Source: Podarcis tiliguerta
Lineage: Eukaryota
Direction: 5' to 3' (one strand)
Assembly (NCBI GenBank): GCA_965153285.1
Contig: OZ229110.1
DNA: 64,000 bases
The notes under the pieces were generated by a model, which saw nothing but the letters and a program-made list of their open reading frames with translations, did no database searches and had not been told where the DNA came from. This document shows, one piece after another, positions 21,001 through 64,000 of this stretch; within the stretch, counting starts at the first letter, position 1; every line of letters begins with the position of its first letter. Made by a program: the position numbers and the translations under genes.

Positions 21001-24000
21001 ACTTTGCTCCCAGAGGCACACCCCACTGTCTCGAGACAGACAGAGGCCAACATGTAGTTGCCAGCTCCTGGACCCAATTCACTGGTGTTTAAGACCCTCA
21101 ACAACTCAAGTATTTCAGGTATTTGAAGCCTATCTCCATCCCAACAGACCCTCTTGTGTATTAAGATGTTTGTAATTTTGTCACCCTTAAGAGTGCAGGG
21201 AATGATAACCCCAGGGATGACTATCTCTTTGGCTACCCCTAAATTGTAGAAATCCCTCACCATAGAGGTATGTCTATTAACACCATTATTCAGAAATGGA
21301 AAATATGTTGAAGGCAAGTCACCGTTAAAACTTTCATGAACAGAGTAACTCACCTGAGCAGTGAGTAAAGTAGACAGAGATAGGTCTGCTCGTTCTTCAG
21401 TAATGTAAGTCCGTGGTTTACCATCCCACAATGCGCAAACCTCCAAATCCATCAGCTTCAACTGAGTCTTTGATAAACCTGGCAAGCGATTACTCTGTTG
21501 CTGCTGCTGTGCCTGACGCTGTTTCCCCTGTACATTTTCTTCTGTGCCTGATGCCATGAGAGCATCTATCTCACTAACTGCTTGACTACTTGGCTGAGAC
21601 TTAGTGACTTTCTCTTCCAAAGCTGTCAAGTTGCGTTTCTGCTTTGTTACAACAGGCAAACCTATTGTAGCCTTCTGGGGTGACTTTTCTTTGCCTCTAG
21701 AACCTGCTTGCTTTTTATTCTTAATTTTCTCTCTCTTCTTTCTAGAGACAGAAGGCACAGAAAGAGGCTTGAAAGTATAAGAGCTAGTAGTAGTAACACT
21801 GGATTGCTTTTTCAGAACACTATCTAGTGTCCGTACATAACTGGTGCTTTTAGTTGGAAGCTGGTAAACCACAGGACAACTGGATGTACTAGGAGAGAAT
21901 TCCATGCTCGTTTCCATTAACTTCCCTTCATTTTCCAAATATTCATCAAGCTTGTCACTGCAGAAGGCAGATCGATTCTTCAAGGAGCCTTCTAAAATGC
22001 TACCTGAATAATCACATAAATCAATTTTCAATTGAGTATTGTCAACTTCATTATGATGTGTTTGCATAGATTACATTGGTAAAAGCTTTAGAAACTGATG
22101 TACAGAGTAGCTGTGGTAAGAAACATTGTCCACTATAGAAACAGAAAGGTGGTTTGTGGGGGGGGTTTAGTGCTGTTTCTGGAAGTCTTCCAGCTCTCAG
22201 AAACAGAAGTAAACAAAAGGGGGAGGCACGTTGTACACAAAAGCAAACTATTTCTCAATAAATGTCAAACTTTATTGGTGATTGTAATTTGGAGAGGATC
22301 CTTTCCTTCTTCAGGGGCTGATATAAACAATCATATCAACTCTATACATTGGCCCAGTTCATACAGAGCTCTAAGCCAAATCAAGGCTAAACACAAAGCA
22401 GCAAATATGTAGGTTTAGACAATAATTCTACCAGATTACAGCTACTGATTAACAGTGTACTTAGGGGTTTTGTAGATGGAATAACCAGACACCCAACTAA
22501 TCCATTATGTTAAGTGACTCTGGGGTGCAGGTGTCTGGAGAGTTCATTTCCCCATTTCATTTGGCTCAGAGAAAGTAGCAGGAAACACATCCTAAATCTT
22601 ACCTTCATTTTTTGAAGAACTATGTAACTTCCCTCGCCATCCTTTTATCTTTGTGAAGTCATTCGTCTTTCCAGTCCTGGAAACAAAGGGAAGCCCAGTA
22701 TCTGGTGGGAAAGACAGTCAAGCTAGTTTTATGTGCTGCTAGGTAACAATTTAACAGATTATGCTCTTGCAGTATATTTTTACATAAAGAGCCTTCAGAA
22801 CCATTACCTTTAAGCACTGCCCAATCCTATGCAGAGTAAGGTGTTTCTAACTCAACTAAAATTAGTATGGTAAAGGTGTGCTGAACTGTACATAAATATT
22901 TAGCCTCAGTTTACCCTGCCATATGGGACCAAACAATTAATCGTAAATGCATCTATTGAACAGCAGATCTTTTAGGCAAAGCCAAAATTTCAGTGCTAAC
23001 ATAACAGTGAAGTGTTCCTGATTTGTTCTACCAAAACAGAAATGCTTCTTCTAAAGACATAAAGCTATCCTGTAACTCAAACTTGAAGCTTCATTGTAGT
23101 ATTAAGAAAGATGGTGACTTACCATAAGAACTGGAATTGGTCCTTACGTTTTTCCACAATGTGTATTCATCAGAATAACTTAGTGGTAGCTGCACACCCA
23201 AATATTTTAAATCAATGCTCATTGTTGGGTCCACTAAGTTCAGCTTTAGTCCCACTACAAGAAGAAAATGCCATATAAAAATTCTATACAGCATTCGTAA
23301 ATGCAAAGCTTGTACATACTTCACAGTGCTTACACTTACCTTCCCGAAGACTAGGATGTATCACCTGCTTGTACTTATAAGATTTCAACTCTTCCAACAA
23401 TTCTGATTCCAGCTGTGGTATTCTCTGACTGTCTGTGAAATACATATTTAAATTGCTTAAATATCTTTACCATTTCTAATTCACTTGACTAAGCATCATT
23501 TACTTTCTACCCCAATCCCATAACACACACAATACTCTTCCCCCAACAACTCCTAAAAGAGAGAGAAAGGAACTGGATGAGGGCAACTGCACTGTCTCTC
23601 AACAGTACAGGGTCAATGCCAATTTTTTCTCATCTCTCACCTCACTTAGTGCTCAGTATTTTAAAGTCTTGGAGAGAGAGAGAACCTCAGAGGCTGGACC
23701 ACATGCTTAGCATTTCTATGAAACTTGCAAACCTCTTGCAGCAGAAACAGTGGACTTAGGGACACTGTTGAGTATTAATGTAAAAAATGCAGTATAAAAA
23801 TGTGACACCAGAGGGCGCTGTAGAGCAGTGATCTTTTGCCTATGGGAAATTGCATTGGGAGCTAATTTTTAGTATGTGTGTGGTTTTTTTTAAATAGCGT
23901 TTTCCAGATCAGTGTAGATTCAGCCAGGGACAAAATGCCAAAAAGAACTGGTCAGGGCTCATCCAGACTTCCTTTTGTGCCATGGAAAACCTGATTGCTA

Positions 24001-31839: not shown

Positions 31840-32904
31840 TATGGACTGAAATTTCTCCAAAGATTTCACAATACAGGCAAATTTTTCTTCATGTTCTTCA
31901 TTCTGGAGGGGGAGGTCAATGAAATATGTAACATCCATGTAATGTGAGCAAGACATTGTACATGATAAATGATCCCTTCAGAAGTAATCAAAGTGACAGT
32001 CATTACACGTAAAACAATACATTGCTACTGTCAGCTTTCACAATGATTTTTATAAAATTTCACCACTTGGCAAATGTAGATTCATGGCAGAGGTAAGAAT
32101 TTTAAATGAGATTTTCATTTCAAATTATGGGGCAATTAATTCAAAGGTCAACAAACAACACAATAACAAAAAATATTTAGAAGTAACCACAGAAGCAAAA
32201 ATAGTGGCTGATGTCTAACTGTGGTGTCCTACTTGTGCAACAAACTTTTGCTTGTACAAACTGGGCTTTCCCTTCTTTTCCTACCCAACCCCCAGCACAG
32301 CAAAAATTACACCTGGGATGCTCCAAAGCAGCAGAAGAAAAACATGAGTTCTTTGAGGAAAGATGTGATAACAAAACAGGGTTGTGCTGCTACCTAAACA
32401 TTAGCAGCAATTGCATCTGAAAATGTGTGTATAACCTAGCCAACCATTTCACCTGAACTGTATCACAAAATATGATTTTTACTCTGGCACTGTAGAACTT
32501 TAGAGCAGCATTACTATTAAATCACATAACTGGTATTCTAAATGCATGAAATTAACCTTAAGGAACAAGTTACTGATCGCAATCTTAAATTTGTTTTAAA
32601 GATTAAGGCATAAAGAACAATGTAACATACATTCTAAGGAATTATTCTGAGCTAGTTTGGAAAGTATCAATGATCTACTTAGTACAAGAAATGTAATAGT
32701 GTAGCAATTTTCCATTTGTTGAAATTTGTTAGTACATCAACACTAATATAAAACAAAATATTTACTCTAGAACAAATCCATTCAACTCCACCAATTGTAT
32801 TCCAGAGAAAGATGGCTCTAGGCTGTATTTACTGCCACTATCAGAGCTCTGTCACACACAACTGCAGAATCCACCAACCCTAAAGTACTTGTTATATTGT
32901 TTCC

Positions 32905-33659: not shown

Positions 33660-35290
33660 GCTCCCGGGCAGTCACGTGCTCCCGTAGGAAGCGACCCGCA
33701 GGAATCCCGTCAGGATCGCCCTCCGAGGCGAAGCCCCGTCTCCGCTTCCCCACTCTGCCCTAAGCGCAGCTTCGCAAGCCGCCAGCCGAAGGAACATATG
33801 CTACCAACATGGACGGCGAAACCGCCATAACGCTGCCGAGTGCGAGGGGCGGGGGAGGAAAGAGAAAGAGAGGGAAAGCGGCGGAGGTAGCGAGCGGGGC
33901 GAAAGTCAAAAAGGCCCCGAAGCTTCCCAAACTGGGCGGCCTCCTCGGGAGCTCGGCATGCACGTGCCCGACCCGAAGAGCAAGGGGCGCAGCGCCCCAC
34001 CGGCCCCCGGCGCGGCTGGACGCGAGCCGAAGCCTCCCATCCCGAAGTCGCCCGGGATCCGCCTCGCCCTCGCCTTCTGCCTCGGCGCAGCCGCTTACCC
34101 GGGAACAGCGCAGCCGCAGCGCAGCTTCACACGGCACGCGGAGGCGCCTCGAACTCCCAGCCCCCGCGTGGCGCCGAGGAGCCTCCCTGACACGCGAGGA
34201 GCCGCGCGCGCGCGCCGCCTCAGAGTTCCCGCCCCTCCTCCTCCTCCTCGGCTTCGATCCCGCCCGCTCACTCGCTCACGGCCTCCCACGAAGGGGTGTC
34301 GAGTTTCTCAGCTGGCAGGTGGTGTGCGGGACACGCGGAAAACTGCGCTCGAGTCACTTCTGGGGCACGCGCGCGAGCGAGCGCGCGGGTAAATAAGAGC
34401 GAGGCGTTCCCCTTCCCCGCCAGTTACCGTGAGATTGTGAGCAGGGCGGGTAGAAACCCCTCACCCCTCCTCCTCCTCCTTCTATGTTCACAGTCAAAAA
34501 TCGTGTTACCCGACGGACAGAACGTGCGCACGCACCCATGTGACGTCGCCGGCGCGCCTCGAGCGGCGCACGCGCCGTGCGGGCCCGCGCACCTCCTCCT
34601 CCTACTCGCCTGCAGGCTGTCACGTGCCCGCGGCTCGCCTCTCTCTCTGTCTCTCCTCTGCCCCCTCCCTCCCGTCCTGTTCCCTTTCGCGCTTGCCCGG
34701 CGAAGCTGCGCCTGAGGTAGCTCGCGGCTACGGGAATGAACTTCCGCGCCTTTTTCCCCGCTCCTCCCCCTTCAACTGTCGTCCCAAAAACGCACACGCT
34801 CCCTGACGAGCGGAGGTCGGTTGTTTTACGCTGCTCGTGCTTCCGAGGCCCTCCCTGGAGCCCTGCCCCCCCCCCCACCTCGGACGTTCACTCGAGGCTC
34901 TTGGGAGCACAGCGTACCCGGCCCGCCGCTGCCCACGACGCCCGGCTCGGCCCTTCCTGCCCTCCGCTCCAGTAGAGGGTTGGCACTATGGCGGGCGCCC
35001 TCGGGCCTTGCGCCAGCCTCTCACGGGTCGCCGTGGGAAAGCGCGCGTGTCGGGCTCCCTCGGAAGAATCTGAGGAGGGACGCCGAGCTGAGGCCAGTTA
35101 GTCGCGGCGGCCGCCGGACGAACCGCCCCGCATTTCTGGCTGCGCGCTTCCTGCTCCTCTCGCTAAGGCAGGGCTGCTCTTTGTTCGTGGCGCGTGAAAG
35201 CCACGCGAGGATTTCCCTTGCCCGCGCGCCAAGGCGCTCGTGCTCTGAATGAAGGGCGCCTCGTCGTGCCCACGCAAGTCCTGCATCTCT
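33660..35290 (-). promoter_or_regulatory. CpG island / promoter of MGA-A
   Basis: About 1.6 kb very GC- and CpG-rich block upstream of the first coding exon, with GC boxes, E-boxes, CRE-like TGACGTCG (34541) and NRF1-like GCGCACGCGC (34566). Confidence 0.9.
34099..34300 (-). other. MGA: Candidate non-coding first exon of MGA-A (5' end uncertain)
   Basis: Strong donor CGG|GTAAGC at 34099/34098 inside the CpG island. Exon 2 carries an acceptor upstream of the ATG, so an upstream non-coding exon is required. Confidence 0.5.
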
Positions 35291-35942
35291 GAAGGATCTC
35301 CTCGAACCGGTTCAGATGCTGCCTTCCTTCCTTCCTTTTTATTTATTTATTCCGTTTCTTACCCGCCCTTCACGATAACGCCTCAGGGCGGGTTGCAGCA
35401 CCCACGGACTTGAACGAGCTCTATTGTCCATAATGTTCCAGTTCTTCGATATCCAGAAACGAAAACCTCTTTGCAATCCCGTTATCTTTTTCGGCTCAGA
35501 GCATAAAGGGCACCCAGATATTAGCCAGGAAACAATGAATGTTAAAGGGAAGAGGCATTACATGTTCCTTGCGCTATTGATTTATTTAAAATAAATCTTC
35601 CCTAGTTTTTTTAATGGTGTGATGATTTTATTATTGTTTGCTTTTTTTGTTTTTGTTTTACTGTCATCAGTTGCCTGGGGCATATTAACATGAAAAGGCA
35701 AATTTAATCATAAATAAAAATATAGATACCAAATACTAACCCGGTTGCTACATTCTAGGCCAATTTAATTTTCCAAGCTGCCCTCAAGAGCAACCCCAAA
35801 TAGAGCATAGTGCAGTAGTCAAGATTTTAGACCTCTTTCCAGGAAGCTGGTATATCAGCCAAAATTGATAGAATGTGCTCCTGACTAGCCTTCGCATGGC
35901 CATCTAGGAGAGGGCCTTGATTTGGGGAGGTGTGACCCCCAC

Positions 35943-36378
35943 CCAGTGTAGGGCAACCAAAATGATCAAGGGACTAGGAACCAAGCCTTATAAGGAAGAG
36001 TTGAAGGAGCTGGATATGTTAAGCCTGGAGAAGAGGATACTGAGAGGAGATAGCCATCTTCATCTCAAGGGCTGTCACATGGAAGAGGAAACAAACTTGT
36101 TTTCTCCTGCTTTGTAGGGTAGGACTCAAACCAATGGCTTCAAGTTATAAGAAAGGAGATTCCAACTAAACATCAGGAAGATGACAGTAAGAGCTGTTTG
36201 ACAGTGAAACAGTCTCCCTTTGGAGGTGTGGACTATTCTTCCTTGGATGTTTTTTTTTGCAGAAGGTTGGATAGCCATCTGTCATGGGTGCTTTCTATAG
36301 CTGAGATTCCTGCACTGCAGGGGGGTGAATTAGATGACTCTCAGGGTTCCTCCCAATCCTACAATTCTATGATTCTAA
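35943..36378 (+). mobile_element. CR1 LINE 3' fragment
   Basis: Decayed ORF2 C-terminus (RATKMIKGL...LKELDMLSLEKRILRGD) followed by an ATTCTATG-type tail. Confidence 0.88.
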
Positions 36379-42131: not shown

Positions 42132-43381
42132 TTACTTTATAGACCTGTCCTTGACTGCTGAATGGGTGGCTTTTAAATCAACAGATGACATGTTTACACC
42201 AACAGGTGCCAACAAAGGCATCATCCTGGTGTTTTGCCTTCCTGAATCTAATAGGAAGCTTGCACTTTTTAGTCCAAAGGGTGCCAGTTTGGGCATGGGC
42301 TTCCACTGTGTGTCAAGGTGGCCGGGTTCCATATCAGTTTTCATCTGCAGAACTGGAAGAGACACATTTGTAGTTTTTGCCATGCATGGCACATTTCCCC
42401 AGCTTCTCCCACTAGTTGTTGAAATGTTACAATTTGGGTCCTTTACTTCAGAGTCCGGCATTAGATTGAAAACACCTGATTCAGATGAAGGATCTCTCAG
42501 GTTCCTGTCACTATTAGTGAGATCGTCGTCTTCCAACTGAAGCAGGAGTGGAGTTCCAGAACCACTACTCTCTTGCACAAAACAGAGGTCCTTATAGCTC
42601 TCACCCAATTTGCCAAACTGCAAGTGAAAGCCTTCTGCTGCTGCTGCAGCTGATACCGTGCAGTTTCCCATAACTTCCAGAGAAAACTCAGTGTTTGGGG
42701 AGTTGATAAGTTTTGATCTGTCTGGGGCCGCATCATTCAGCTGCTGATTGAGGGATACAATTTCATTCAGAAGTGAGGTGAGTGTTTCATCAGTGCCATC
42801 ATTCTTTAGGTCCATTAAGTCACTTGCATCCAGTGCTGGTTCAGGTATTGCAGAGGCTACTTTTTGCAGTTCCATTTCTACCCCGGAGTCCTTGAGTTCA
42901 TTAATCTGTAGCTTCTGAAACGAAGAATCCTTTGACTTTTGTCCCTCACCTCCCTTGTATATATCTTTTAACCTAACCCGATTTCCACTTAACTCTTCAA
43001 TGAAGAGTTTAGTTGCAAATAATTCTGGGGATCCCTTCATACTGGATACATTTACTATTTGTGGGAAACAGTTTTCTTTTTCCCTAAGAAAAACTTGAGC
43101 TGTTCCAGTAGCATCCCTCTGTTTTCTGGAAGATGGTTCCGCATTTCCTTCGGACTGAAAATCAGTTGTTTCCTGCAATACTATCTGCGTGGAAGGTAAG
43201 CATTTCTGGGAATCTGTATCCAGAGTTACATAAGGTTTCTTATTTAAATCCAGGAGTAAATTTGCATTTTCTTCAGTAGCCAGTGACACTACATTTACTA
43301 TTTGTATTTCCTTTGTATTTTCTTCAGTAGCCAGTGACATCACATTTACTATCCTTGGCATCATTAAGGAGTCTTCATTTT
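42132..43381 (-). CDS. MGA-B last coding exon
   Basis: CTTACAG|AA AAT GAA...MMPRIVNVMSL...TDETLTSLLNEIVSLNQQL...WKPMPKLAPFGLK; stop TAA at 42132. Confidence 0.92.
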
Positions 43382-46300
43382 CTGTAAGTAAGCCCAAACA
43401 AAGAAAGGCCTGTTAGAATACTGGTGAGAGAGGGAATGGGATTTAAAGAGCAACTTTTGGCATTGCTAAAGCCTGGGGGGATACTTGTAAGATTCCCAAG
43501 CTTCCCCCCCCCCCGAACGTATCATGGATCTGTCAAAAAAGATCCACCCAGTTTCAAAGGGGCTTGTTAAATAGCATGTGAGGCTGCTGTTTGAAAAGTA
43601 AAAGCCCAAAAGCTTTTATTCCATCTGAAAAACAGAAATGCTAACTATAAGAGATCAACTGCAAAAAAGAACAGAAGTGTCCTATATGATGATGAACCAA
43701 AACACAAATGTGGTGTAGTGGTTAAGAGCCAGTGTGGTGTAGTGGTTAAGAGCGGTAGACTTGTAACCTGGTGAACCGGGTTCGCATCCCCGCTCCTCCA
43801 CATGCAGCTGCTGGGTGACCTTGGGCCAATCACACTTCTCTGAAGTCTCTCAGCCCCACTCACCTCACAGAGTGTTTGTTGTGGGGGAGGAAGGGAAAGG
43901 AGATTGTTAGCTGCTTTGAGACTCCTTAGAGTAGTGATAAAGCGGGATATCAAATCCAAACTCTTCTTCTTCCTCCAAGTGGCAATTCACAAGCCACAAG
44001 AGCAGTGTGCAGAGCCACCTTATAGGAATCAGTATACCGTATTTTTCGCCCTATAAGACGCACATTTCCCCCTCCAAAAATGAAGGGGAAATGTATGTGC
44101 GCCTTATGGGGCAAATGCAGGCTCCTTGGCTTCAGCGATAGCAACGCGAAGCCTCCGAAGCCTGCGCTCCGGAGGCTTTGCGTTGCTTCCGCTGAAGCCA
44201 GGAGAGTCTGCTCTTTGAGGCTGGCCGTGGGGGAAAGCAGCGCTTCCCCCCTCGCCAGCCCCAAAGGATGGGGGGCAGCAGGAAGGCGCGCAACGCCTTC
44301 CTGCTACTCTCCATCCCGGCATTGAGGCTGGTGGGGGGGAAAGCAGCGCTTCCCCCCTCGCCAGCCCCAAAGGATGGGGGGCAGCAGGAAGGCGCGCGAC
44401 GCCATCCTGCTACTCTCCAACCATCCTGTGGGCTTTTGCGGGAGATGGGGGAATTCCCCTACCTCCCACAAAAGCAGGCAAAAGCCGTGCGCTCTTTAAA
44501 GGGGCTCCGCGGCTTCCGCTGGCTTTTCTAGGAGGTGGGGGAATTCCCACCTCCTAGGGAGGGAGTCCGTCCCTTCTCCCTCCTGTGGGCTTTTGCAGGA
44601 GATGGGGGAATTCCGCCACCTCCCGCAAAAGCAGGGAGAAGGTCTTGGAGTAGCGCACAGGCTGCGTGCAGCCTGTCCGCTGCTCCCAGAGCTGCGGGGG
44701 GGAAATCATATTTTTTTCCTTGATTTCCCCCCCTGAAAACTAGGTGCGTCCTATGGGCCGGTGCGTCCAATAGGGCGAAAAATACGGTAATTCTGCCCCT
44801 CCTGTCTCTCTCCCAGCCAAGCTGTTCACTCTAAGGAGATGCCTTTCTGCACCTCCCCAGGAACAGCCAGCCGCCTGTTCTTCCTTAGTTTCCCGTGTGT
44901 AGCTCTATGCCTTTCCTTTGAGTGAAAGGCTTGGGGTAGGATGCTGTATGCCTGGCAACGTGATGGCGGCCCCAAGCTGCCTTTTATGGGATGGCTCCAC
45001 ACACTTCTGCAAGCAAAACTAGACTTTGACTGTTTATTATTAGTGTGGGGGAAGGAGCTGCTACACTCAGGTACACATCAGATCTATGCTTCCCAGAATG
45101 CCCTGGGGATTTTGGTTTCACTTTGTATAAAAATCGCCTCCTTTCTGCAGCCTACCTGTGACACTGCTTCTGTTCTTGGAACATATTAATGGTTTCGTAT
45201 GCCTGTTGGACAGGATTACCGGTTTTGTCTCTCTAGAAAGAGAAAAGGGGCTATTTTCCACTGTGGAACTAGTAGTTCTTGCTGTTTTAATGATTTCCAC
45301 CATATCTTGCTGGTTCTGGTTCTCCTGCTTTTCTAGTGCCTTCTGCTTTGTAAAAATGTATTCTAGCTTCTTCAAGATCGCTTCCTGTGACTTGCCTACA
45401 GAGAAAACAAAGAGTTGGATATCCCTCACTTTGCAATTCAAAGGAACAAAAACACACATTAGCTCAAAATACAGTATTTCATAGTGCAAGATTAGTACCA
45501 TTTACAACGCACATGGCTCGCAAGGATATAGTTAGCAAGCAGAACATCTTTAATACCATTTGCGTCTTTGAAAGTATAATCCTTCGAATCCTACATGAAC
45601 AATTCATCCCAACCACTTTGAATCATCCTAGTATTCTCCTATGCTGGAATTTCTTTCTTCATCTACATGTTTTGTTTTGTTTATTTTTTTAAGAAAACCT
45701 GTCCATGGAGTCATCTCACCTGAGAGTGCAGACACTTTACGAATCAGGGTGTTGCGCTTGCACAACAGGAACTTCTTGTGGCTTGTCAATTGGTCTGCCT
45801 GATCTCTTAGCCTCTGGATATTTTCAGTGGCCTGGAAAGGGACGAAGAGGTCATTTTTACATTCCAGAGCAATACGGGGGGGGGGGGGGGGGACAGCTTC
45901 TCTTCTCTACTCTCAAAGCATCCTAAAAACAAAGCAATGACAGAAACTTTGCAGACATGTTAGCGAATCAGCTGCATTAAAAAATTAGGGCCTTTGTGTA
46001 TATTAGGATAGCAAGTTTCAGCTGGGGACAGAGGAGACAGGGCAAAAAATGCTATTGGTGGAAATAATTATCTTGGCAATTTGCCACTACAGTTAACTGG
46101 CTAATGTACTCAGAGAAAAAAGATTAAGCCAAATGCATTTGTCCAACATGGAGCTGAGTTGCTGTGGCACATTAGAAACCCCCATAAAAAAAAAAAATTG
46201 TATCTCTCTTTTCTATATCTTTCAATTTAAGATTTTTCATCTTGCTGCTGTTAAAAATCAAGTTCTCCTCTTGATGAAGAGGCATTTCCTTCCACATCGA

Positions 46301-49300
46301 GCTAAATGATGAACCATGTACCTGCTCAAGGAGGATGCGCTTGGCAATGCTGGGAGTGCTCTGCAATCCCAAGGCCCCCTGCAGTTTTTCAAAGAGTTCT
46401 TTCATTTCCTTACGCCGACGCTGTTCATCTGCTGTGTGTTTCGGCCGATAAGAAGTCATGCTTCGTGTCCAATTCTTTGGTTCTCTTTTCCAGAGTCCAG
46501 GCGGCTGTGGACAAGAAACAGCACTTTCACCAGACAGGGGGAAAAATGCAGTGACTGGTATAAATACTTGGGATTTTATATTATCTCCCAAACCTGGGCT
46601 TCTGCATGTCTCCACAAAGCTAGCCAGATGCTGGATGGGAATGCATGAATAAGCTAAACAGCTGTTTGGTTTTGAAGGTGCAACACTGGAAAACAAAGGA
46701 GCCACACAGGCTACTGTGCAGCAGCTAGGATTCTCACTTGGGTCACCAAGGGGAATGCGGAGAATGAAGAGAGCCTGAGTACCAATCCTGTCTCATGGCA
46801 CGCGCATAAAGCAAACAATGCCCTTAAGTAATTTAAAAAACAAAAACAACCCACTACCAGTCAATGTATACTTCAGCTGGAATACACACACCGCAAAGAC
46901 ACAACAGTAGAAAAGAAATGTATATTCACTTTAGGGGACGTTGCCATCACTTTATTTGAAGAGTCATGAGCAAGATGCCTAGAAGGATTTAAAAAGAGAA
47001 GTTGTGTTTAGTTGCACAAGTCATTCTGGCTCAGATAATAGCTTAACCTCAATCAAAACTGCAAGAAAACTTTCTTTGTGCTAAAAGGATCAGGAAGTTG
47101 TGCTCTGGTCACACAGGAAATGTCCCTGCTCTGTCCCCTCCTTCTGCTGTGCCCTTCTTGCTTTCTCACTCTGCTCTGCATGCTACTCAGTCTCTTGAAG
47201 TAAACAAATGAATGAACCAAAGGTTGCCTGAAACAGCACATCTTAGGCTCTTAGGACTCTCAAAAATATAATTTGAACTAACATACAAATTAAAGATGTC
47301 CTATATAGCCCCAATAAGCTGATAATATTTGTTATTTTTTAAAATTTAATCTTTGAGTACTAACATTAGTGATTAGGAAACAGTACATCAGCCTATTTGC
47401 CCATCTAGCCCAGGACTGGTCCCAGGCTGAGGTTTTCTGATCTCTTGATTCTTTTAAGTGGAGATGGCAAGAATCTTTTTCATACCAAGCAAGTGGTCTA
47501 CCATCAAGACAAGTTACCACGGAGTAAATTTAGCCTACAAGTGTGTACATCTTTGTATAAAGTCATAGCAGGAAGGAATTCCCACATTACAAATCAAGGT
47601 GCCCAGTCTGCTGTGTAGTTGCAGTTTCTTATGAGACATTAGATTTCTTTTCTCAATCAGTGAATCCAGCCCTTCAGCTATCTGCTTGATTACTCTGGGT
47701 TGGAAGAGGAAGGGCTCTGTAGAGGGGCCAAAAAGGGCTGAATTTAAGCTGTGGTTGCAAAGCTTGACGTTCTACATTGTATCCTTGAAAAGTGGTTCAG
47801 AGGGCAGGCCACCTTTCCAGCCGAAATGGTTCCCCAGTCCCGTCCTAAAGGCTATGAGCTAAGTTAATTAAAATTAAAATTAATTCATTCTGCGAGTTTT
47901 TTCGTCTTGCGAAGCACCACTGTGTATTGACGGTTTCCCATAGGAATGCATTGGCGGGGTTTTTTAAAAAGGCGCAAGAAGTTTCGTCTTGCGAAGCAAG
48001 CCCATAGGGAAATCCGTCTTGCGAAGCAACTCAGAAAATGAAAAACTCTTTCGTCTTGCGAGGTACCACTGTATTTTATAAAGAGCTTCTGGGTGATGCA
48101 TCATTGCAAAGTCTCACTGTGTGAACCAAATAAACCACACAGCAGAGCCTTGGTCTGCATTAAAAGTAACTATATCTGCTAGACATAATAAAAAATAGCA
48201 CGATGCTAAAAATCCATTTGCTGGTGTGTCTTTGTTGTTGTTGTTGTTTAAAAAAAACTTGCTTACAACTGTCTGGGAAGTAGGGCATGAGCTGCTGTAG
48301 TTTTCAGGTGAGAAATAATACTTTTCTTTTTAAACTCTTCAGGTTCAGTATTCATTTTCTTGTCACCTTGACTGGAGTCCCTTCCATTCTGAAACAGAAC
48401 ATTAAAAAGGCAGTTAAACTCAGTCCTGCAGAGAAGCTCCAGTCAGGTAATGTTTCATTTCAAACTCAGAATGTGGTGTGTTTCTTCCTTGTGCTAGCAG
48501 AGAGGAGGCAACCAGCAAAGGCAGGTGTGTTCATGGTAAACCATTGGCTATGGTATATTGTGACATGGAAACTGGCCTATTGCTCAAACATTAATACTCA
48601 GGGTATAACTGAAGAATGGTAATAAAGACCATTGTTTTAATGTAAAGTTGCAAAAACTTGTTAAGGTGTATAATTATTTAACTTTGGTGTTCTGAAGATT
48701 AAGTAACAAATTGAGTCTTACCAATTGAGAAGTATCACCTGCAGCTTCTTCAGGACAGTTAACATGATGCTCCTTGTTGTGCATCGCTGTAATGCTATAG
48801 GTGTGGTCTAACGATACAGCATCGGGATGGAAGATGGGAGAATCACTGGATAATTGCTCTACAATTTCGGCATACTTTTTGACCATCTCTGAAGTAGTAG
48901 CACTACTCTCACATATGATACTTTCAGAATGGAAATCTGATGGATGTGCTGGCAACTTATTTTCTTTTAATTTGGTATTGTATATTGTGATTTCTGACTC
49001 TTTGGCCTCCACCGTTTTCAAATGTGGTATTTTTTCTTCCAGCTTGACAGAACTGCACTCTCCTTTCCAATTGGTATTCTTTACCTGGAGGGATACAACA
49101 TGATGGACAGTGGAGTTTGGAACGTTTTTCAGCTCTGGAAACTGAACTACTGTAGTTAGCCTAATACCACAAAACAAAACTCATCTATGGCATTTGTCAA
49201 GACTCCATACACTCCAATTTCTGACTGAGTCATGAAAATATTTACACACTTTTTAACCAAAGAGGAAGTTAAATTCTCAACAACAAAATTTTTGCAAGAA

Positions 49301-52300: not shown

Positions 52301-55300
52301 GCAGTTTCCATTTATATTTGATAACAGTAAGTGAAGATTTAACACACCTGGATAGTCCAGAATGTTTATTCAGCAAACTCTCAGAAAAAAAGGTTTTGAA
52401 AATGTTTTGAACGCTTTTCTAGTAAGACTTACATTCATCGTTGCTTCTCATCTGTTTATTAACATGCTCCAGTTTCCAATCCCTTTTTCCGTTGCAGCAT
52501 TCAATAATTTCACATAAATATTTTTTCAAGCTTTTCTTGTGCACAGAAACTCCCTTTAACAGGGCCACCCTTTTCTTCAGACAATCAAATGTGCAATCTG
52601 TCTTGCAGGAAAGTGTAGGCTGGCACATCCCAGAAGCTAAACTAGCACAGACACACCCAAGCTGGCAGGTGCCACTGTGTGCTGGATCTTGGCTGCTGGT
52701 TATCTTACAGGTAGGCTTGCTTTTGAGTGAAGGCTGAAAGAATATACAAATATGTATCTCAAGAACCTACAAGAACCTACAAACAACAGATTTTGAACAA
52801 ACGTAAGGTATAAGATCAATTACACAACACTTTATGATACATAATTTATACCTTGTCCTCAACTGGATGGTATAAAAATGCACAAAAGATGAAGGGAAAC
52901 AGGATTGTACCCCGTGTGTAACAGAAAGTGAAAACTAACATCCAATAGCCTTTTAAAACACAGAACATGGAAGCATTAATGTTCAAGATTATCAGGGGGG
53001 GGAAGCGGACTGTTCTGTGCAATTTTCATTTGTTTCTTCTGTTCTTAATACTGTTTAGAGTCTGATCACAGAAGTTCTTCTAAGCAGGCTAAAAGCAAGC
53101 CAATTTGATCATCATTCTGCAAGCAGCAGTCTTGCTTAGGGTTCCACAAGGGTCATTCACTAGACTGTTGGTTCAGAATTGCAAAGAAGTCTTGCGAGAC
53201 TCGCCAGACACTTTTTGTTGAATAAAATGGATTTGTCTTGTGCATGGGAACATTAGAATCCTACCTCCCCCCAGCAATGGTCTTTTATAGGACATTAACG
53301 CAAATAAAGTGTAATTATAAGAAGAGCGTGCTGCAGCAGGCCAACAGCCCATCTAGTCCAGCTTCCTATTCTCACAGTGGCCAACAAGATGCCCGTGAAA
53401 AAATGTGCAAGCAGGAGCCAAGTACAAGAGCATTCTTTCCCATCTGTGGTTTCCAGCAACTGGTGCTCAGAAGCATTACTGTACAGTCATGCCTCGGGTT
53501 ACAGATGCTTCAGGTTGCATTTTTTCGGGTTACGGATCCGCCGAAACCCAGAAGTACCAGAAAGGGTTACTTTCGGGTTTCGGTGGCCATGTATATGTAG
53601 AAGCGCTAAATCACGCTTTGCGCATGCGCAGAAATGCCAAATTGCAACCCGTGCGTGCACAGACACGGCACTGCAGGTTGCAAACGCTGCGGGTTGCGAA
53701 CGTGCCTCCCGCACAGATTGTTCGCAACCCAAGCATCCACTGTACTGCCTCCACAGCTGTGGAGACAAAGCACAGCTATCATGGCGAGAAGGCAATGACA
53801 GCCTTTTCCTCCGTGAGAGTTACAAAGGAAGGCAAAGGACGCGGCCATTTCAACTTACCTGAGGGCTAAGCAGAGATGCTAGAGATAGGTCTGCTCGCTC
53901 TTTGGTAATGCAAGTCCGTGGCTTCCCATTCTGCAATGCACGACCTTCCAATTCCATTAACTCCACCGGAACCTGCTTATAAATGAATTAATGTCACCAC
54001 AATTTTACCTGAATCTGAGCACAGAGTATCAACTCTCTGTATATATATATTGCACATAGTGATATTTGGTCCTGCTCCTACTCAGACTAAACCTTTTGAA
54101 ATTCATGGACATTACTAACTTAGGTTCGTATATTTCAATGGGTCTACTGTGAGCCAGACGTCACCTGAATACAAGCCTAAATTGGTTTAGAAATGTGAAA
54201 ACAAATCCCAGAAGTTACAGGTCACACACCGTGAACTTATGAATAATTCTAATGCATGAAGACAATAGAGGTTCCTTTCTTTTCTTACGCTAATCTTACT
54301 CTGCCAGTTACATTGCATGTGAAACAGAATTAAGAAATCCTAATGGCCCATTTGAATTTTGCAGATGATCTGCAAGGACATGGTGGTGAAATAAAAATGG
54401 ACATGTTTTGCCTTGTAATTTCTGAATGTAACTTCTTTACTATGCAGCAGATATGTATACTGAGTTATGTATTTCTCTTTGTTTTTCATGCTTTTTCCAA
54501 AAACCAATGACATATACCTTCCCCACCTCCTGCAAAATAGTCAAAAAAGGATTGCAAAAGAAAAATGACTTGTGAGTGCGTGGGTCCATTTCTAGCATAT
54601 GCATATCTAACCAACGACTAAATGGTAAAGATTATTGAAGCTTACCTGAGAGACGATCAAAGTATCCAGAGAAAGGTCTGCCCATTCTTCAGTAATACAG
54701 GTTTGTGGCTTCCCATCCCTCAAAGCACAATCCTCCAGCTCCATCAGTTTCATCTGAGATAAATGCAGTGGTGGACAGCTACTCTGTTTTGGCTGCTGTG
54801 CTTGACGCACAGTTATTTGCTTTCTCTGTATGTTTCCATCTAATTCTGGCACATGAACATCGTCATCCACTTGGCTATATGATCTAGACCTATTGATGTT
54901 CTCTAAGGCAGAGAAATCATGCTCCTGCTTTGCCAGAACAGGTAAAGGCACTGTAAACTTTTTGGAAGATTTTACCCTGCCTCGAAAAGTTGTTTGTTTA
55001 TTCTTAGTTTTTCTTCTCCTTCTAAAAACGGAAGGCAGAGAAAGAGGCTTGAAAGCATAAGTGCTGGATGGAGTAATGATGGGTTTCTTCTCTGGAACTT
55101 TATTGAGGGCTTGAGCACAGCTGGTACCTTTGGACGGAATCCGGCAATCCATGGGATAACTAAACAAGCTTGAAGAGAATCCCGCACTTTCCATTAGCTT
55201 CCCTTCCCTTTCCAAATATTTGTCCAGTTTATCGCTGCAGAAGGCAGATCGGTTCTTCAGTGAGTCCTCTAAAATGCTACCTGAATTAATCCAGAAAATG

Positions 55301-58300: not shown

Positions 58301-61300
58301 ACAGAGAACACACATGAGAAACAATATCTGAATACTATGTTCTAAGGGCGATATCAAACTAAACCGTTCTGTACAGCTCAGTCACTTCTGGCTGTACAGT
58401 GGAACTCCCCTCTCCCCTCTCTGTATTCCCCTGAAATCGGTTATGGTTCTCCCTCAACCCTTCAGAACATTTTGTTTGGGGTGGCATGAAGAGAGGAGAG
58501 GGACGAGAAGTTATGTTGCACGGCCAAAACTGTGCTAGCCGAACTGTTTTGTTAGATGCTGCTCTAGATAACTATCACAGCAGCTGCGGAATCTATTGCT
58601 GATAACATACCTTCTTGAAGACTAGGATGTATCACTTGTCTGTGCCTGAACGACTTCAAATCTTCTAAGAGCTTTGTTTCCAGAAGTTGTAGGTTTATTT
58701 GAGAGTCTGTCATAGAACAAAAAAGTATTATTGACACATACAAATACAAAAAAAGTGTATCACATTCTAACATACAAATGGTAAGAATGTGATACACTTT
58801 AAAAAAACAAAAAACCTACTGTTTGCTTAGCAGTCTTAATTTCTCCTGCACTAAGGCGGCCCCATCAGTGTCAAGAGTACCTGAATCATATGTAGTCAGG
58901 AAGGAAGCTTCTCCATTCTGTAGTCCTTCTCTTCCCCCAATTTTATCAAGTCTGTGTTTATCAAGAACTTCCTGTACATAAAGAGGGACTACAATAAGTG
59001 TTAAATGCTTAAGCAAAAGTGGCCTAGACACCCTACCAAGAGTCAAATTAATCTTAACAAGATTTAATACATACTAGAGCTGAATAAAATGGTCTGGATT
59101 TTAAATTCTGCATGATCACATACAAAAGGCAAGGTCACAAGTACATAAAAAGAACACCCTGCTGATTCGACCAGCGGCCTATCTTGTCTAGTGTGCTGGA
59201 TGCCTATGAAAAGCCCAAATGCACACTTCCCCTGATATTGGAGTTAATATATAAGTCATTAACATCGCCTTCTCCTCCACAAATTCACCCTTTTAAAGCC
59301 ATCCACACTGACAGCCATCACTTCATCTTGTAACAGAAAATTCCATTGTTTTTACTATGTACTGAATGAAAAAGTATTTCCTTTTGTCTGCCTTGAATCT
59401 TCCCACATTGAGCATCATTGGATTGCTCTGGGTTCTAAGTATTCTGAGAGGGAGAAAGAAGTCTGCCTGTCCACTTCTCCACACTATAATTTTTACACAC
59501 ACCCATCACATCCCTTCTTAACCCATGTTTTTACTAGACTAAAAGCCCCAAATGTTGTAACTTATCAGTGAGCTGCCACAGTCCCCACTTTGGTTGCCCT
59601 TTCCCAACTCTGTAGCATCCTTCTTGAGGTGCGAACACAACCGTACACAGAACTCTCCAAATACGGTTGCATCACAGGTTTATAGAAAAGGATTATGGCA
59701 CTGACAATTTTATTTTTTATTCCTTTCCTGATGATACCCAACATGGTCTAGACACTCACATTCAGAGCTATTGAAACTGAAGAGCGTGAGCGTCAAAGCA
59801 TAGAGGTCCCGCCACCCCAAACCTGCAATTTTCACAATTAAAAAAAGAAATGCACATTTAGCTTTCAATCTGTCTAGTATAAACTATGCTAGACAATATT
59901 AAATTTAAATGAAAGATTTACCTTTGATGCAAAGGATGCAAAGAGGACTCCATCTATATCCTCGTAATCAAGCACGAGCTCTGGCTTGGCAAAATCTGGT
60001 CCCACATTGCTTGTCATAGCAGACTTTGCTGTGAATTTCAGGGATGGTTCAGTCTCAATCACTTTACGTGGTCTTCCTCTTTTAGGTGGACCAAACAACA
60101 CATAATCTGCTTTCTTATCAAGACCCCTTCCCAACACAGCCTTCTTGACTACATTTTTCTCTTTTCTTCCATGAATAAATTTGGTTGACGTAGGGGGCAA
60201 GAGGTTGAAACTCATTGCTTTTTTTGTTACCATATGGCTGCTGTATGTTTCAGTATTTATCCATTGCGCATCTTTGCCCAAATAACATTTCTCTGTGTTA
60301 TTGCTTCTGAAATGAAGTTCTTTATGTTTTGCTTCCACAACTTTAAGCGGGCTAGCTAGTTTGTTATTTTCAAAACAGACAGGCAAAGAATTTACTGAAT
60401 GATTATTCAAAGAAGACTTCTGTGTCTTATAAGAAGACAAAAGAGCTTCAAGAACAGAGATGGTCATATTCTTGGTGGTACCACAGCACTTTAAGGAGGC
60501 ATCAGGCACTGTCCCACTACCCAATTTTAAAGTTTTGTCTTTGGCAACGCTCTGTGGTTGCTTGTGGGATTCAAGGTCCACTTCTCTTCTTCCTATTTCA
60601 TCACAGTTTTTCTCCAACTGTGTCTCTGAAATCTTGTTTCTATCTCTACAGAAATATTTTTCTGTTGCTTTATCAGTGCCTTCCCGGTTCATGAGTATCC
60701 TCTCTGTATGTACCCTTGGCCCATAAACATAGTAATCTACAGGCTTATCTTTAATGGATATACGGATATCATCATTTGAGTTCAGCTGTGATTTCACACG
60801 GGAATCCCTTTCACAAGCTGTTGGACTGGAGAAAGGAAAACAAAAACTAGATCAATGTAATTGCAGAAATTAAATAATATCCTAATAAATTTATTTTGTC
60901 CAGTTTATCATGCATTTGTATAAAAATTATGTATCTGTTATTGCTAAGTAATGCAAAACCCTAATGGCTGTGCAGTTTATATATAGCTTTAGCAGCTTCC
61001 ATTACTAGTGTGAAAGTAAATCAGCCTTCCTTTATCCATCAATCAATACATACATCATTCAGGTTATCTGTGATACCATATATATTTTCTAAAGCAATAC
61101 ATTTGCTGGATGAAGAGTTTGGATTTGATATCCTGCTTTATCACTATCCTAAGGAGTCTCAAAGCGGCTAACAATCTCCTTTTCCCCTCCTCCCCCACAA
61201 CAAACACTCTGTGAGATGAGCGAGGCTGAGAGACTTCATAGAAATGTGACTAGCCCAAGGTCACCCAGCAGCTGCATGTGGAGGAGCGGGGACACGAACC

Positions 61301-63781
61301 CAGTTCAACAGATTACAAGTCCACCGCTCTTAACCATTACACCACACTGGCTCTCTGGATGCTATAGTCTCTCTGGATGCTATAAACTCAAACCAAGTTT
61401 TATTTTAGTGTCACAAAATTATTTCCTTCTGTATTCCCATCTTCTTTTGGTTGATTTGGAAGTACCGTAAGTTCCAATGAGACCTTCTCCCAATTAAGCA
61501 TGCATAGAATTTTGGCCTCATGTACCTACCTGGAAATAATTACTTTTAAATAAGTATGCATAGAATGGGACTGACTGCCAGCTTTAGTTTAGAATTTACA
61601 GTGGTACCTCAGGTTACAGACGCTTCAGGTTACAGACTCCACTAACCCAGAAATATTACCTCGGGTTAAGAACTTTGCTTCAGGATGAGAACAGAAATCG
61701 TGCGGTGGCGGTGCAGCGGCAGCCGGAGGCCCCATTAGCTAAAGTGGTACCTCAGGTTAAGAACAGTTTCAGTTTAAGAACAGACCTCCGGAACAAATTA
61801 AGTTCTTAACCCGAGGTACCACTGTATTTATTTAAATCAGAGATGGGGAACTTTTTTGATCCCACAGGTCAGATTTTGACCTGGCCACACCCTGTGGATC
61901 AATTTTGACATATGGGCAGGACAACCTACCTGTCAATCTCAGGACACTTGTATGATGCCACATGATTGATAGGTGGGTCATCCTGCCCACCTGTCAAAAT
62001 CACTTACACTGGGTTCCGAAGCGCCCAACAGTCAGCTGGGAACTGACTCCAATTCTGCATGCTATCGGCAGTGATAACAGATACAAATAGCATCAAAGGA
62101 ATGACATAAGCACACTTAGCACTAAGTGAGTCAGAAAGCGGTGCAGGGAGGCCAGGGCACTCACTGGTGGGGAAGATCTCATCTGCAGGCTTAATATGGC
62201 CCAAAACACATCTCCAAAATACCCAACCAAGCCATTTCTAATAAATTTCACCCATCCATCAAACGGCATCATGTGACATCTTCTATCAACCATTTTGAAC
62301 TGCCTACCACATGCCACAGCTTTCCTTGGGATCGCCATAAAAATTATGTATTCTACATACAGTTCCCACAACACTAAGAGCAGCAAAGATTACCAACATG
62401 GGGCTGGAATGGTTACAACATTTTGGGTGTTTAAGTGTAGGGAAAACGTAGGGGACACACACACACACACACACACAAGATAAAAGCCTATAAAATTTTG
62501 CATGGTTTGGGGCTATCCAATGAAACTGAATATAGAATGGCCCCAAACCATTTAGGACACAGCACATAGTTAAACTATGAAATTTGTTACCATGAAGTGT
62601 AGCAATGGCCACCAACTTGCATGGCTTTAAGAGGATTAGACAAATACATAGAGGACAAGTTTATCAATGGCTACCAGCAATGATCGCTGTGTTCTACGTC
62701 CACCATCACAGGCAGTAAGCCTCCAATTACCAGTTGATGGGAATCACTCATCCCCAATAATGATAGATATGTAACTGTACCATTCAGACGCATCACATTT
62801 TGTGTCTGGAGTAAATGTTTCTTTCTCCAAAGAAGTTTTATACATCTTCCAAGCATTACATGAAGCATCTAGGTCTCTTTGCTTTGGATCCAAAACATCA
62901 CCTTCAGTGAGACACCTGTAACTGCTTGTAAAGTTAGAAACTCTACGTCTTTTCTGCTCTGGGCAATCATTTTGCATTGCCTTATGTTCAGGTCTGCTGC
63001 TCAGACCAGCTTTCTTGAACCCTTTGAGAAATGGGTTGTAGTCTATTTTCAGTTGTGTCATTTGTATGTTTTGATAGGCAGTCACAGCAAAGAACTCTGT
63101 CTGTGGGAAAATGAAGGTATGGACATCAGGACCATTTAGCTGAATAACCTCTGTGACTCTGTCAGCAAGCACCAAGTGTAGCCGAGGTAGATAGCGGTGC
63201 ATAGAGTGCAGAATGATATGCCCTTCCTGGTCCAAGGTATTGTTAGTAAGTTTGAGTTTGTAGAAGGAGACTGGTTGGTGCATCCAGTAACGGCCAGTAG
63301 AAGGTGATTCGGGGTGAATGAATACTCTTCCCAGCACATGGGGTTCTGCTTTCCCACTGGGCTCCCAACTATGGCCATTCCATTTATAGCGTAAGTTGTC
63401 AACTGGAGAAATATCCATGACCAAGATATACTTCAGCTTGGAGTCTAAGCCTGTTATCCAGTATCGACAGTATGGAAACATCCGCCTTCCCTGCTTAGTC
63501 AGAATCATTTCTGTGCCGCGATAGTAGAACTCATTCCACATATTGTTGTTGTCCAAGGTAACAGTAATGCTTCCTGAGGTGCAATCTGCTGGAAGGCAGG
63601 TCTTCACTTTCGATTTTACTGGTGCTGCAAGGCCATTGTCCTCTTGATTTGAAACGAAGTGTCCTTGGTCAGCTTTTCCAGTGATCTGCGGCTGTTTCAT
63701 GAGAACGTAAAGAGCAGGCACTTTACCCAACGCCTTTCCACCATCCTCATTCCCAAAGGCCATTGGTTGCTTCTTCATCAT
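42132..63781 (-). CDS. MGA copy B, remodelled MGA-like paralog (~2258 aa, spliced)
   Basis: 17 coding exons traced, all GT-AG and phase-compatible, totalling 6777 nt with no internal stop. Retains T-box, AT-hook, degenerate Cys-rich region, bHLH-ZIP and C-terminus. Confidence 0.88.
43709..43973 (+). mobile_element. Squam3-type tRNA-derived SINE
   Basis: TGGTGTAGTGGTTAAGAGC A box (duplicated), GGTTCGCATCC B box and (CTT)n tail; matches the inverted copy at 61112-61355. Confidence 0.88.
44037..44786. mobile_element. Non-autonomous Tc1/mariner-type DNA transposon
   Basis: TIR CCGTATTTTTCGCCCTAT...ATAGGGCGAAAAATACGG, TA on both sides; GC-rich interior with a ~105-bp internal repeat. Confidence 0.9.
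45156..45395 (-). CDS. MGA-B exon 22 homolog
   Basis: GKSQEAILKKLEYIFTKQ...KPLICSK; 240 nt, the same as A. Confidence 0.9.
45720..45831 (-). CDS. MGA-B exon 21 homolog (helix 2/zipper)
   Basis: ATENIQRLRDQADQLTSHKKFLLCKRNTLIRKVSALSG; 112 nt, GT-AG. Confidence 0.91.
46322..46504 (-). CDS. MGA-B exon 20 homolog (bHLH basic region/helix 1)
   Basis: YRPKHTADEQRRRKEMKELFEKLQGALGL; CCACAG|CCG ... CAG|GTACAT. Confidence 0.9.
46930..46978 (-). CDS. MGA-B exon 19 homolog
   Basis: CCTTCTAG|G HLAHDSSNKVMATSPK|GTGAAT; phase 2 to 0; resembles A's NSVHDHSSQKTPK. Confidence 0.75.
47890..48071. mobile_element. Partial pogo/Tigger-like MITE
   Basis: Repeated CGTCTTGCGAAGC subterminal motifs ending in GAGGTACCACTG|TA; left end not evident. 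Confidence 0.65.
48267..48388 (-). CDS. MGA-B exon 18 homolog
   Basis: NGRDSSQGDKKMNTEPEEFKKKSIISHLKTTAAHALLPRQ; TTTCAG|AAT ... TT|GTAAGC (phase 2, as in A). Confidence 0.86.
48722..49141 (-). CDS. MGA-B novel exon derived from the middle of ancestral exon 17
   Basis: 420-nt open phase 0-0 segment FPELKNVPNSTVHHVVSLQ...SLDHTY..., homologous to A ~9460-9800. Donor TTG|GTAAGA; the choice among clustered AG acceptors is uncertain. Confidence 0.7.
49539..50566 (-). CDS. MGA-B fused exon (5' of exon 10 + 3' part of exon 17)
   Basis: Begins SVCSAEPDQAVTDLPLRVKEEGDM (A exon 10: TICGTEPEKPVKNFPLWVKVDGEM) and ends EKTDDSAEE...ETL|GTGAGC (A exon 17 end); phase 1 to 0. Confidence 0.87.
52433..52733 (-). 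CDS. MGA-B exon 9 homolog (degenerate Cys-rich region)
   Basis: PSLKSKP...TCQLGCVCASLA...DCTFDCLKKRVALLK; GT-AG, phase 0 to 1. Confidence 0.88.
53316..53812 (-). mobile_element. CR1-type LINE 3' fragment interrupted by a MITE
   Basis: ATAAGAAGAGCGTGCTG...CCCATCTAGTCCAGC...CAGTGGCCAAC typical of an antisense CR1 3' end; resumes after 53744. Confidence 0.6.
53484..53742. mobile_element. pogo/Tigger-like MITE (same family as 5784-6014, opposite orientation)
   Basis: TA|CAGTCATGCCTCGGGTT...AACCCAAGCATCCACTG|TA. Confidence 0.82.
53859..53972 (-). CDS. MGA-B novel exon 8b (duplicate of exon 8 3' end)
   Basis: AAGCAG|VPVELMELEGRALQNGKPRTCITKERADLSLASLLSPQ|GTAAGT; 114 nt, phase 0-0. Confidence 0.78.
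54646..55280 (-). CDS. MGA-B exon 8 homolog
   Basis: GSILEDSLKNRSAFCSDKLDKYLEREGKLME...DGKPQTCITEEWADLSL; GT-AG. Confidence 0.92.
55455..55553 (-). CDS. MGA-B exon 7 homolog
   Basis: TALSFISKTGKTNDFRKIKGWQGRL; 99 nt. Confidence 0.91.
56624..56755 (-). CDS. MGA-B exon 6 homolog
   Basis: VGLKLVSVDPTLSIDLKYLGVQLPL; 132 nt. Confidence 0.92.
57091..57332. mobile_element. pogo/Tigger-like MITE
   Basis: CAGTCGTACCTTGGT...ACCAAGGTATGACTG|TA termini. Confidence 0.8.
58019..58269. mobile_element. pogo/Tigger-like MITE
   Basis: Perfect TIR CAGTGGTACCTTGGTTTA/TAAACCAAGGTACCACTG with TA on both sides. Confidence 0.9.
58611..58706 (-). CDS. MGA-B exon 5 homolog
   Basis: LETKLLEDLKSFRHRQVIHPSLQE; 96 nt, GT-AG. 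Confidence 0.9.
58881..58971 (-). CDS. MGA-B exon 4 homolog
   Basis: EVLDKHRLDKIGGREGLQNGEASFLTTYDS; 91 nt, phase 0 to 1. Confidence 0.85.
59150..59740 (-). mobile_element. Old CR1-like LINE fragment
   Basis: Decayed antisense CR1 motifs (CAGCCATCACTTCATC...GTATTTCCTTTTGTCTG...TGGTTGCCCTTT). Confidence 0.6.
59922..60825 (-). CDS. MGA-B exon 3 homolog (AT-hook)
   Basis: CPTACERDSRVKSQL...PPKRGRPRK...YEDIDGVLFASFASK|GTAAAT. Confidence 0.91.
61112..61355 (-). mobile_element. Squam3-type SINE, full length
   Basis: Reverse complement of the 43709 element from GAGAGCCAGTGTGG to its tail; possible CTGGATG target-site duplication. Confidence 0.88.
61599..61824. mobile_element. pogo/Tigger-like MITE
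   Basis: TA|CAGTGGTACCTCAGGTTA...TAACCCGAGGTACCACTG|TA. Confidence 0.88.
62545..62748 (+). mobile_element. CR1-like LINE 3' fragment
   Basis: CACAGCACATAGTTAAACTATG...GGATTAGACAAATACATAGAGG resembles a CR1 3' region. Confidence 0.55.
62781..63781 (-). CDS. MGA-B exon 2, coding part (T-box domain)
   Basis: MMKKQPMAFGNEDGG...complete T-box...NPFLKGFKK; donor TG|GTACAG (phase 2, as in A); likely acceptor at 63852. Confidence 0.94.
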
Positions 63782-64000
63782 GTACAGTGTTGTAAATTAT
63801 CATATCAACTCCGAAGTTGCAAGAGTTCTGACAGCCTTTCCCTCATGGCCACCTTGTTAAGAAACAACAAAATACACAATAAATATTTGCAGAGAAAAAG
63901 TAGACTTGAAATAAGAACATAAGTGGAGAAGGAAAGCACATGTGATTTCAGCAGCATGCCCCAACCCATACACATTTAACCATAGTTTAGTTTAACCTAG

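Follow-up and report, generated by a model that had tools for sequence, protein, structure and literature searches.

The stretch analysed here, 64,000 nucleotides of contig OZ229110.1 from the lizard Podarcis tiliguerta (assembly GCA_965153285.1; hereafter 'the window'), carries two tandem paralogs of MGA, the gene for MAX gene-associated protein, a T-box plus bHLHZip factor. Both paralogs lie on the minus strand and are colinear exon by exon, with their exon-2 copies separated by about 32 kb. Within exon 2, a tract of about 700 nt is nearly identical between the two genes and has very probably been homogenised by recurrent interlocus (non-allelic) gene conversion between these old duplicates. 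The features on which this reading turns are the following:

1-31839, minus strand: gene A (full MGA), cut off by the window start after about residue 3014 of 3132 (tblastn with Podarcis muralis MGA, 3132 aa)
42135-63781, minus strand: gene B (MGA-like), whole coding span, about 2236 aa and complete in the window (tblastn with P. muralis MGA-like, 2236 aa)
30790-31839, minus strand: coding part of exon 2 of gene A, within the open reading frame 30784-31956
62781-63781, minus strand: coding part of exon 2 of gene B, with its ATG at 63781 and a GT donor at 62780-62779, within the open reading frame 62744-63781
31060-31611, minus strand: Pfam T-box of copy A (PF00907, 253 bits, full profile 1-182; residues 116-299 of the open reading frame)
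63011-63562, minus strand: Pfam T-box of copy B (PF00907, 242 bits, full profile 1-182; residues 74-257 of the open reading frame)
31078-31779, minus strand: putatively converted tract of copy A, 702 nt, including 12 nt (31678-31689) missing in B
63029-63718, minus strand: putatively converted tract of copy B, 690 nt, with the first flank differences at 63028 and 63719

In tblastn alignments, all residues (1-2236) of the P. muralis MGA-like protein are covered by gene B at 85-99% identity, exon 2 corresponding to residues 1-330 (96%), and gene A matches P. muralis MGA at 97-99% over most of its length, exon 2 (31839-30790) corresponding to residues 1-350 (99%). The closest database relatives of both open reading frames are reptile MGA and 'MGA-like' proteins.

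Across the tract, A 31078-31779 and B 63029-63718 are 97.1% identical in a base-by-base alignment, differing by 20 substitutions (12 at third, five at first and three at second codon positions) and one in-frame 12-nt indel. An earlier sequence-only reading of this DNA had counted about 15 differences in some 590 nt between A 31081-31670 and B 63032-63620; the exact number of substitutions is indeed 15, and the uninterrupted identical runs that it listed (134 nt at A 31469-31602, 131 nt at 31322-31452, 97 nt at 31218-31314 and 89 nt at 31109-31197) are all reproduced, while the true tract is somewhat longer than those limits. Both edges, at A 31077/31078 and 31779/31780, are abrupt, and the coding sequence beyond each is diverged: 13 differences fall within the 17 nt adjoining the 5′ edge, and at the 3′ edge all three positions of A 31075-31077 differ. 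Counted per 50 columns, identity is 46-50 in the tract, 26-36 in the coding flanks and about 15-23 in the introns. Describing the homogenised segment as the T-box domain, as that reading did, is right for nearly all of the T-box but imprecise at both ends, as the tract starts 56 codons upstream of the Pfam domain and stops six codons short of its end; the likeness does reach into the N-terminal linker, whose last 56 codons the tract takes in.

Synonymous divergence (dS) between A and B collapses locally in this tract and is far from uniform along the pair, as had been anticipated from the sequence alone. By the Nei-Gojobori method, the tract gives a dS of 0.09 and a nonsynonymous divergence (dN) of 0.019, the exon-2 flanks a dS of 0.62 and dN of 0.385, and the twelve other exon pairs a dS of 0.78 and dN of 0.33. 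When the comparison is limited to 4-fold degenerate sites in codons with the same amino acid in both copies, seven of 95 sites differ in the tract and 124 of 320 elsewhere (Fisher p = 5.6e-10), for corrected divergences of 0.078 and 0.546, respectively, and the longest unbroken series of matches spans 31 such sites (permutation p = 0.0005). Across the twelve other exon pairs 4-fold divergence ranges from 0.14 to 0.67 (pooled, 121/303 = 0.40). Divergence in the tract is low compared with the rest even where the amino acids are identical, which bears out the earlier argument that purifying selection on the protein would be insufficient to preserve third positions. The surroundings are as diverged as that argument supposed: the other exons are colinear at 26-66% protein identity, the introns show identity at the random level, and a self-blast of the window matches exons only.

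To place the two genes, we aligned 26 full-length database proteins, with turtle, alligator and bird as outgroups and with eight B-types, from three lacertids, Hemicordylus (two isoforms), Elgaria, Euleptes and Gekko. In a tree of the protein outside the tract (1892 columns), all eight B-types form one clade (support 100/100) that is sister to all squamate A-types (100/100), and the A and B clades each match the species tree; an approximately unbiased (AU) test on these columns rejects a lacertid A+B clade (delta log-likelihood (lnL) 661, p = 4e-5). The B-types also share derived characters just downstream of the tract, namely a two-residue insertion and an 8-10-residue deletion, as well as B-specific N-terminal residues. 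Because all B-types, geckos included, form one clade outside the tract, these protein sequences show one duplication of MGA before crown Squamata, that is, before geckos split from other squamates. Crown Squamata is about 200 million years old.

The tract tells a different story. Its tree, built from 228 columns, unites A with B in each of four lineages, namely lacertids (100/99), Elgaria (100/99), Hemicordylus (98/98) and Euleptes (97/91); the B label requires at least five changes on this tree, and B monophyly is rejected by the AU test (delta lnL 171, p-AU 6e-65). Within a species, A and B tracts differ at 8-13 amino acids, compared with 29-39 between B tracts and 19-25 between A tracts of different families, and A and B have lineage-specific residues in common, also in the linker, where conservation is poor. 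Tract branches are very short for A-types and long for B-types. In every lineage the 3′ edge falls between NPF and KGF, close to where the T-box ends, whereas the 5′ edge varies, from the start codon in Euleptes to about 26 codons in for lacertids. The Euleptes B tract is paired with Euleptes A, whereas that of its sister Gekko is unpaired with any gecko A-type, and conversion events would therefore differ in time among lineages. The sequence-only reading had predicted T-boxes grouped by species and other exons grouped by paralog, which holds between families, where the tract pairs A with B by lineage, the rest sorts by paralog and the AU tests agree; it does not hold within Lacertidae, where the tract is not grouped by species.

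The dS collapse, the lineage pairing in the tract and the AU tests together support the recurrent interlocus conversion first proposed from the window, and from the database proteins we infer independent conversion in at least four squamate lineages, a process older and more widespread than is visible from the window alone. We envisage that a break in one copy would be repaired with the paralogous exon as template, so that the patch is overwritten and the flanks remain unexchanged. We rejected unequal crossing-over in favour of conversion because diverged coding sequence flanks the patch at either end. The direction may be mainly from A to B, with B drifting and then being reset from A, as the short A and long B branches of the tract tree suggest. 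Purifying selection on the T-box presumably keeps the copies similar enough for conversion to continue, and the diverged flanks would act as barriers to it.

Within Lacertidae, the tract groups weakly by paralog, not by species, and the last tract-wide homogenisation would therefore predate the split of the four lacertids (the window species, P. muralis, Lacerta agilis and Zootoca vivipara). A handful of sites are nonetheless mosaic. One has G in both Podarcis copies and S in both Lacerta and both Zootoca copies; at another, the B copies of the window and of L. agilis keep the ancestral M, and those of P. muralis and Z. vivipara show the V of copy A. Three neighbouring sites at which the other B copies differ are in the A state in Zootoca B, and a further site reads H in Podarcis B, as in A, against Q in the B copies of Lacerta, Zootoca and Elgaria. 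The history of the window lineage may thus have been one of tract-wide homogenisation before the lacertid radiation, in keeping with a 4-fold divergence of 0.078, followed by smaller patchy events, this second part being drawn from few sites. As a separate observation, the B tract of the window species differs from that of P. muralis at seven of about 228 residues and the A tract at none; between conversions, copy B's T-box would on these sequences evolve much faster than copy A's.

These timing data bear on an alternative in which each lineage underwent a single old conversion and the similarity in the window is its decaying trace, with no recurrent process. A tract divergence above zero at 4-fold sites (the same 0.078) is what such a trace would leave, and the lacertid B tracts do group weakly, with several B-specific states common to Podarcis and Lacerta. 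However, at least four lineages would each need a conversion of their own, and in geckos Euleptes B is converted and Gekko B is not. The 20 tract substitutions are moreover clumped (nine neighbours within 10 nt, p = 0.015), and wherever a site is homoplastic, the change brings B back to the state of its local A copy. We consider a single event per lineage very unlikely.

It is also highly improbable that the B-types arose by independent recent duplications, each family deriving its own B copy from its local MGA, with fast divergence outside the T-box and long-branch attraction then drawing the copies together. The B branches are indeed long (0.3-0.36 per column), and B-types are found in some families only: among the listed hits they occur in Lacertidae, Cordylidae, Anguidae and two gecko families. 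Attraction would not, however, account for the derived indels and N-terminal motifs common to all B-types, geckos included, and the B clade has full support (100/100) in a data set for which the AU test rejects a lacertid A+B clade. In the window itself, synonymous divergence of 0.5-1.2 outside the tract and unalignable introns fit a young duplicate poorly. The patchy distribution suggests loss in several lineages, or genes that are unannotated. No B-type was among the listed protein hits for snakes, iguanians, Tiliqua, Varanus or Rhineura, and a protein search with the portion of P. muralis B outside the T-box returned no B-type genes beyond those already found.

A third possibility involves no conversion at all, the tract being held constant by strong purifying selection that includes synonymous sites, be it for RNA structure, splicing enhancers or some overlapping element. 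The T-box does belong to the best-conserved portions of MGA, and the very short A-type branches of the tract tree are of the kind that such constraint would produce. A conserved element would nevertheless match across species, and here the two copies instead share lineage-specific states, in the linker too, and pair by lineage, A tracts differing more between families (19-25 residues) than A does from B within a species (8-13). The twelve other exon pairs, for their part, diverge at 4-fold sites even where their amino acids are conserved, over the range given above. We therefore regard synonymous constraint as exceedingly improbable, and recurrent conversion remains the reading that we follow.

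The reality of both copies was addressed with Logan short-read contigs of four runs (X1, X2, X12 and X15) placed on 58500-64000. X1, X2 and X12 represent three organisms, and X1 is taken to be of the same species as the window because it shows no differences from it over about 2.6 kb of sequence unique to gene B. In all three, k-mer depth over the tract is about two-fold that of the unique gene B flanks (25.7 against 10-11 in X1, 14.2 against 9-10 in X2 and 30-31 against 13-15 in X12), and contigs start or end at copy-specific sites; a shared contig, for example, begins at 63060, one base past the A/B difference at 63059. Such two-fold depth with branching is what a de Bruijn graph is expected to give for two near-identical copies, unlike for a B T-box that is divergent. 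The annotated genomes of P. muralis, L. agilis and Z. vivipara, which are independent assemblies, show the same near-identity with the same edges, each with distinct exon-2 products. Two separate near-identical copies thus exist. Species-specific letters occur at 63305 and 63311 in the merged contigs of X2 and X12, and may belong to one copy or to both.

It follows from the depth in three organisms and from the same pattern in three independent lacertid genomes that the mis-polishing raised as a danger in the sequence-only reading is excluded: although tracts that are 97% identical and merely 32 kb apart are a setting prone to polishing error, and although X1 shows B letters directly at only three of 13 diagnostic sites, a truly divergent B T-box overwritten with copy A reads is almost certainly not what the assembly records, given the doubled depth, the branching exactly at copy-specific sites, the concordant genomes, a coherent set of 20 differences plus an in-frame indel of which part recurs in the B copies of other species, and an X2 run that carries the B letters at the remaining diagnostic sites.

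Several points do count against recurrent conversion as we have described it, or limit how far it can be pressed. G+C at third codon positions is 0.46-0.49 in the tract and 0.34-0.41 in the 3′ flank and other exons, a small rise that is confounded by the codon usage of the domain and is at best a weak signature of biased conversion. The Logan contigs merge both copies into a mixed A/B path, in which the 20 differences stay unphased. Within lacertids the three B tracts group together, if weakly (86/74), and the sites that speak for conversion after the radiation are four or five homoplastic ones, which may partly reflect parallel change. The phylogenetic test uses amino acids and its dating is rough. 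Finally, the B-type clade is built of long branches, for which the tree alone leaves attraction possible; the shared indels argue otherwise.

A second, weaker candidate for conversion between the same genes lies in the last large exon, where it is picked out by identity, dS and a protein tree:

B 42804-42940 and A about 346-480, minus strand: second candidate conversion patch
B 43314-43403 and A 796-885, minus strand: further part of the same candidate

Here 90-nt windows reach 0.87-0.92 identity, and 0.88-0.92 at B 42804-42940, with a dS of 0.05-0.22 compared with 0.5-0.8 nearby. In the protein tree of this region, gecko B-types fall inside the gecko A clade (100/99) and lacertid A and B group together (93/84), and lineage-specific motifs are common to both paralogs.

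Gene B appears to be expressed. Run X15, a small data set that is RNA-like by automated guess and comes from a related organism, has contigs on exons 2, 3 and 4 of gene B and a depth of zero in the introns, and the start of one contig coincides with the predicted exon-2 donor (62781). This pattern suggests that gene B is transcribed and spliced. Pfam finds the HLH domain in copy A (exon 5157-5345) at 35 bits and in copy B (exon 46319-46510) at 23.4 bits against a cut-off of 20.7, with profile positions 2-27 (helix 1) only, and in P. muralis B the score of 19.5 bits is below the cut-off. By these scores the HLH of copy B would be weakened, not absent. The MGA conserved domain (PF16059, MGA_dom) scores 47 bits in P. 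muralis A and was not found in P. muralis B; precomputed Pfam annotation lists it for those A-types with the domain on record and for no B-type.

Interlocus conversion and concerted evolution have been described for the mammalian stress-inducible Hsp70 genes (PMC5865164) and the vertebrate TLR1 family (PMC3125219). The lizard case resembles them in that the paralogs are linked, synonymous divergence has collapsed over a sharply bounded patch of a few hundred bases, the trees of the patch and of the rest conflict, and one segment is under both purifying selection and conversion. It differs from them in that the MGA paralogs predate crown Squamata, the patch is part of one exon in a gene of 2200-3100 codons, and the same 3′ edge is kept in at least four families. 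A literature search returned no description of MGA duplication or of T-box conversion in lizards. The mechanism is a textbook one, and our finding adds an example, not a new principle; this long-lived squamate case, however, seems undescribed, and it brings together a duplicate of great age, a small conversion patch whose 3′ edge is the same in several families and, as donor, a single essential transcription factor that targets Polycomb. One practical consequence is that trees built from the domain would misdate the squamate MGA duplication as recent and lineage-specific.

MGA is described as the scaffold of the non-canonical Polycomb complex PRC1.6 (PMC5806899, PMC8266391). Copy A is like known MGA in having a T-box and HLH in the window, with the MGA conserved domain also present in its P. 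muralis ortholog. Unlike in that picture, several squamate families have a second, shorter copy (about 2236 aa) that lacks a Pfam MGA_dom hit and whose HLH is weakened in the window and in P. muralis, and our results draw attention to this undescribed MGA-like gene of lacertids, cordylids, anguids and geckos, which may bear on PRC1.6 regulation. A splice variant of mouse Mga in germ cells that lacks the bHLHZ is reported to be dominant-negative on PRC1.6 (PMC8102552). Copy B is similar in that it retains the T-box with a weakened MAX-dimerising end, and dissimilar in that it would be a separate gene, not an alternative transcript of a single one, and in that its HLH is weakened, not absent; by analogy, the mouse variant is a possible lead to the role of copy B and not evidence for it.

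It is conceivable, though we think it rather unlikely, that conversion has itself been favoured. Copy B would then be a squamate-specific, T-box-matched competitor or modulator of MGA/PRC1.6 with a weakened MAX-binding end, akin to the dominant-negative mouse germ-cell variant, working only if it recognises the same T-box sites, and selection would keep a tether of some 200 million years while defending a B-specific end of the recognition helix at the fixed 3′ edge. The gene pair offers a natural system for setting conversion that persists merely through similarity kept by purifying selection against conversion that is selected for matched DNA-binding specificity.

Three further observations concern the two genes outside their tracts. 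A segment found only in gene B, 53853-53966, resembles part of the B exon at 54634-55284 and A 21348-21461 (66% over 38 aa), and to judge from these matches would be an internal duplication within gene B. G+C peaks at 0.59 in 34001-36000, compared with about 0.40-0.44 around it; this interval is just upstream of gene A exon 2 and downstream of gene B, and probably corresponds to the first exon of gene A and its CpG-island promoter. Lastly, the intron between exons 2 and 3 of gene B contains very high-copy repeats, with summed contig depth of about 260,000 to millions at 61076-61995 and about 1000-1700 at 62548-62731 and with many contig joints at 61350-61597, and these look like transposable-element insertion.

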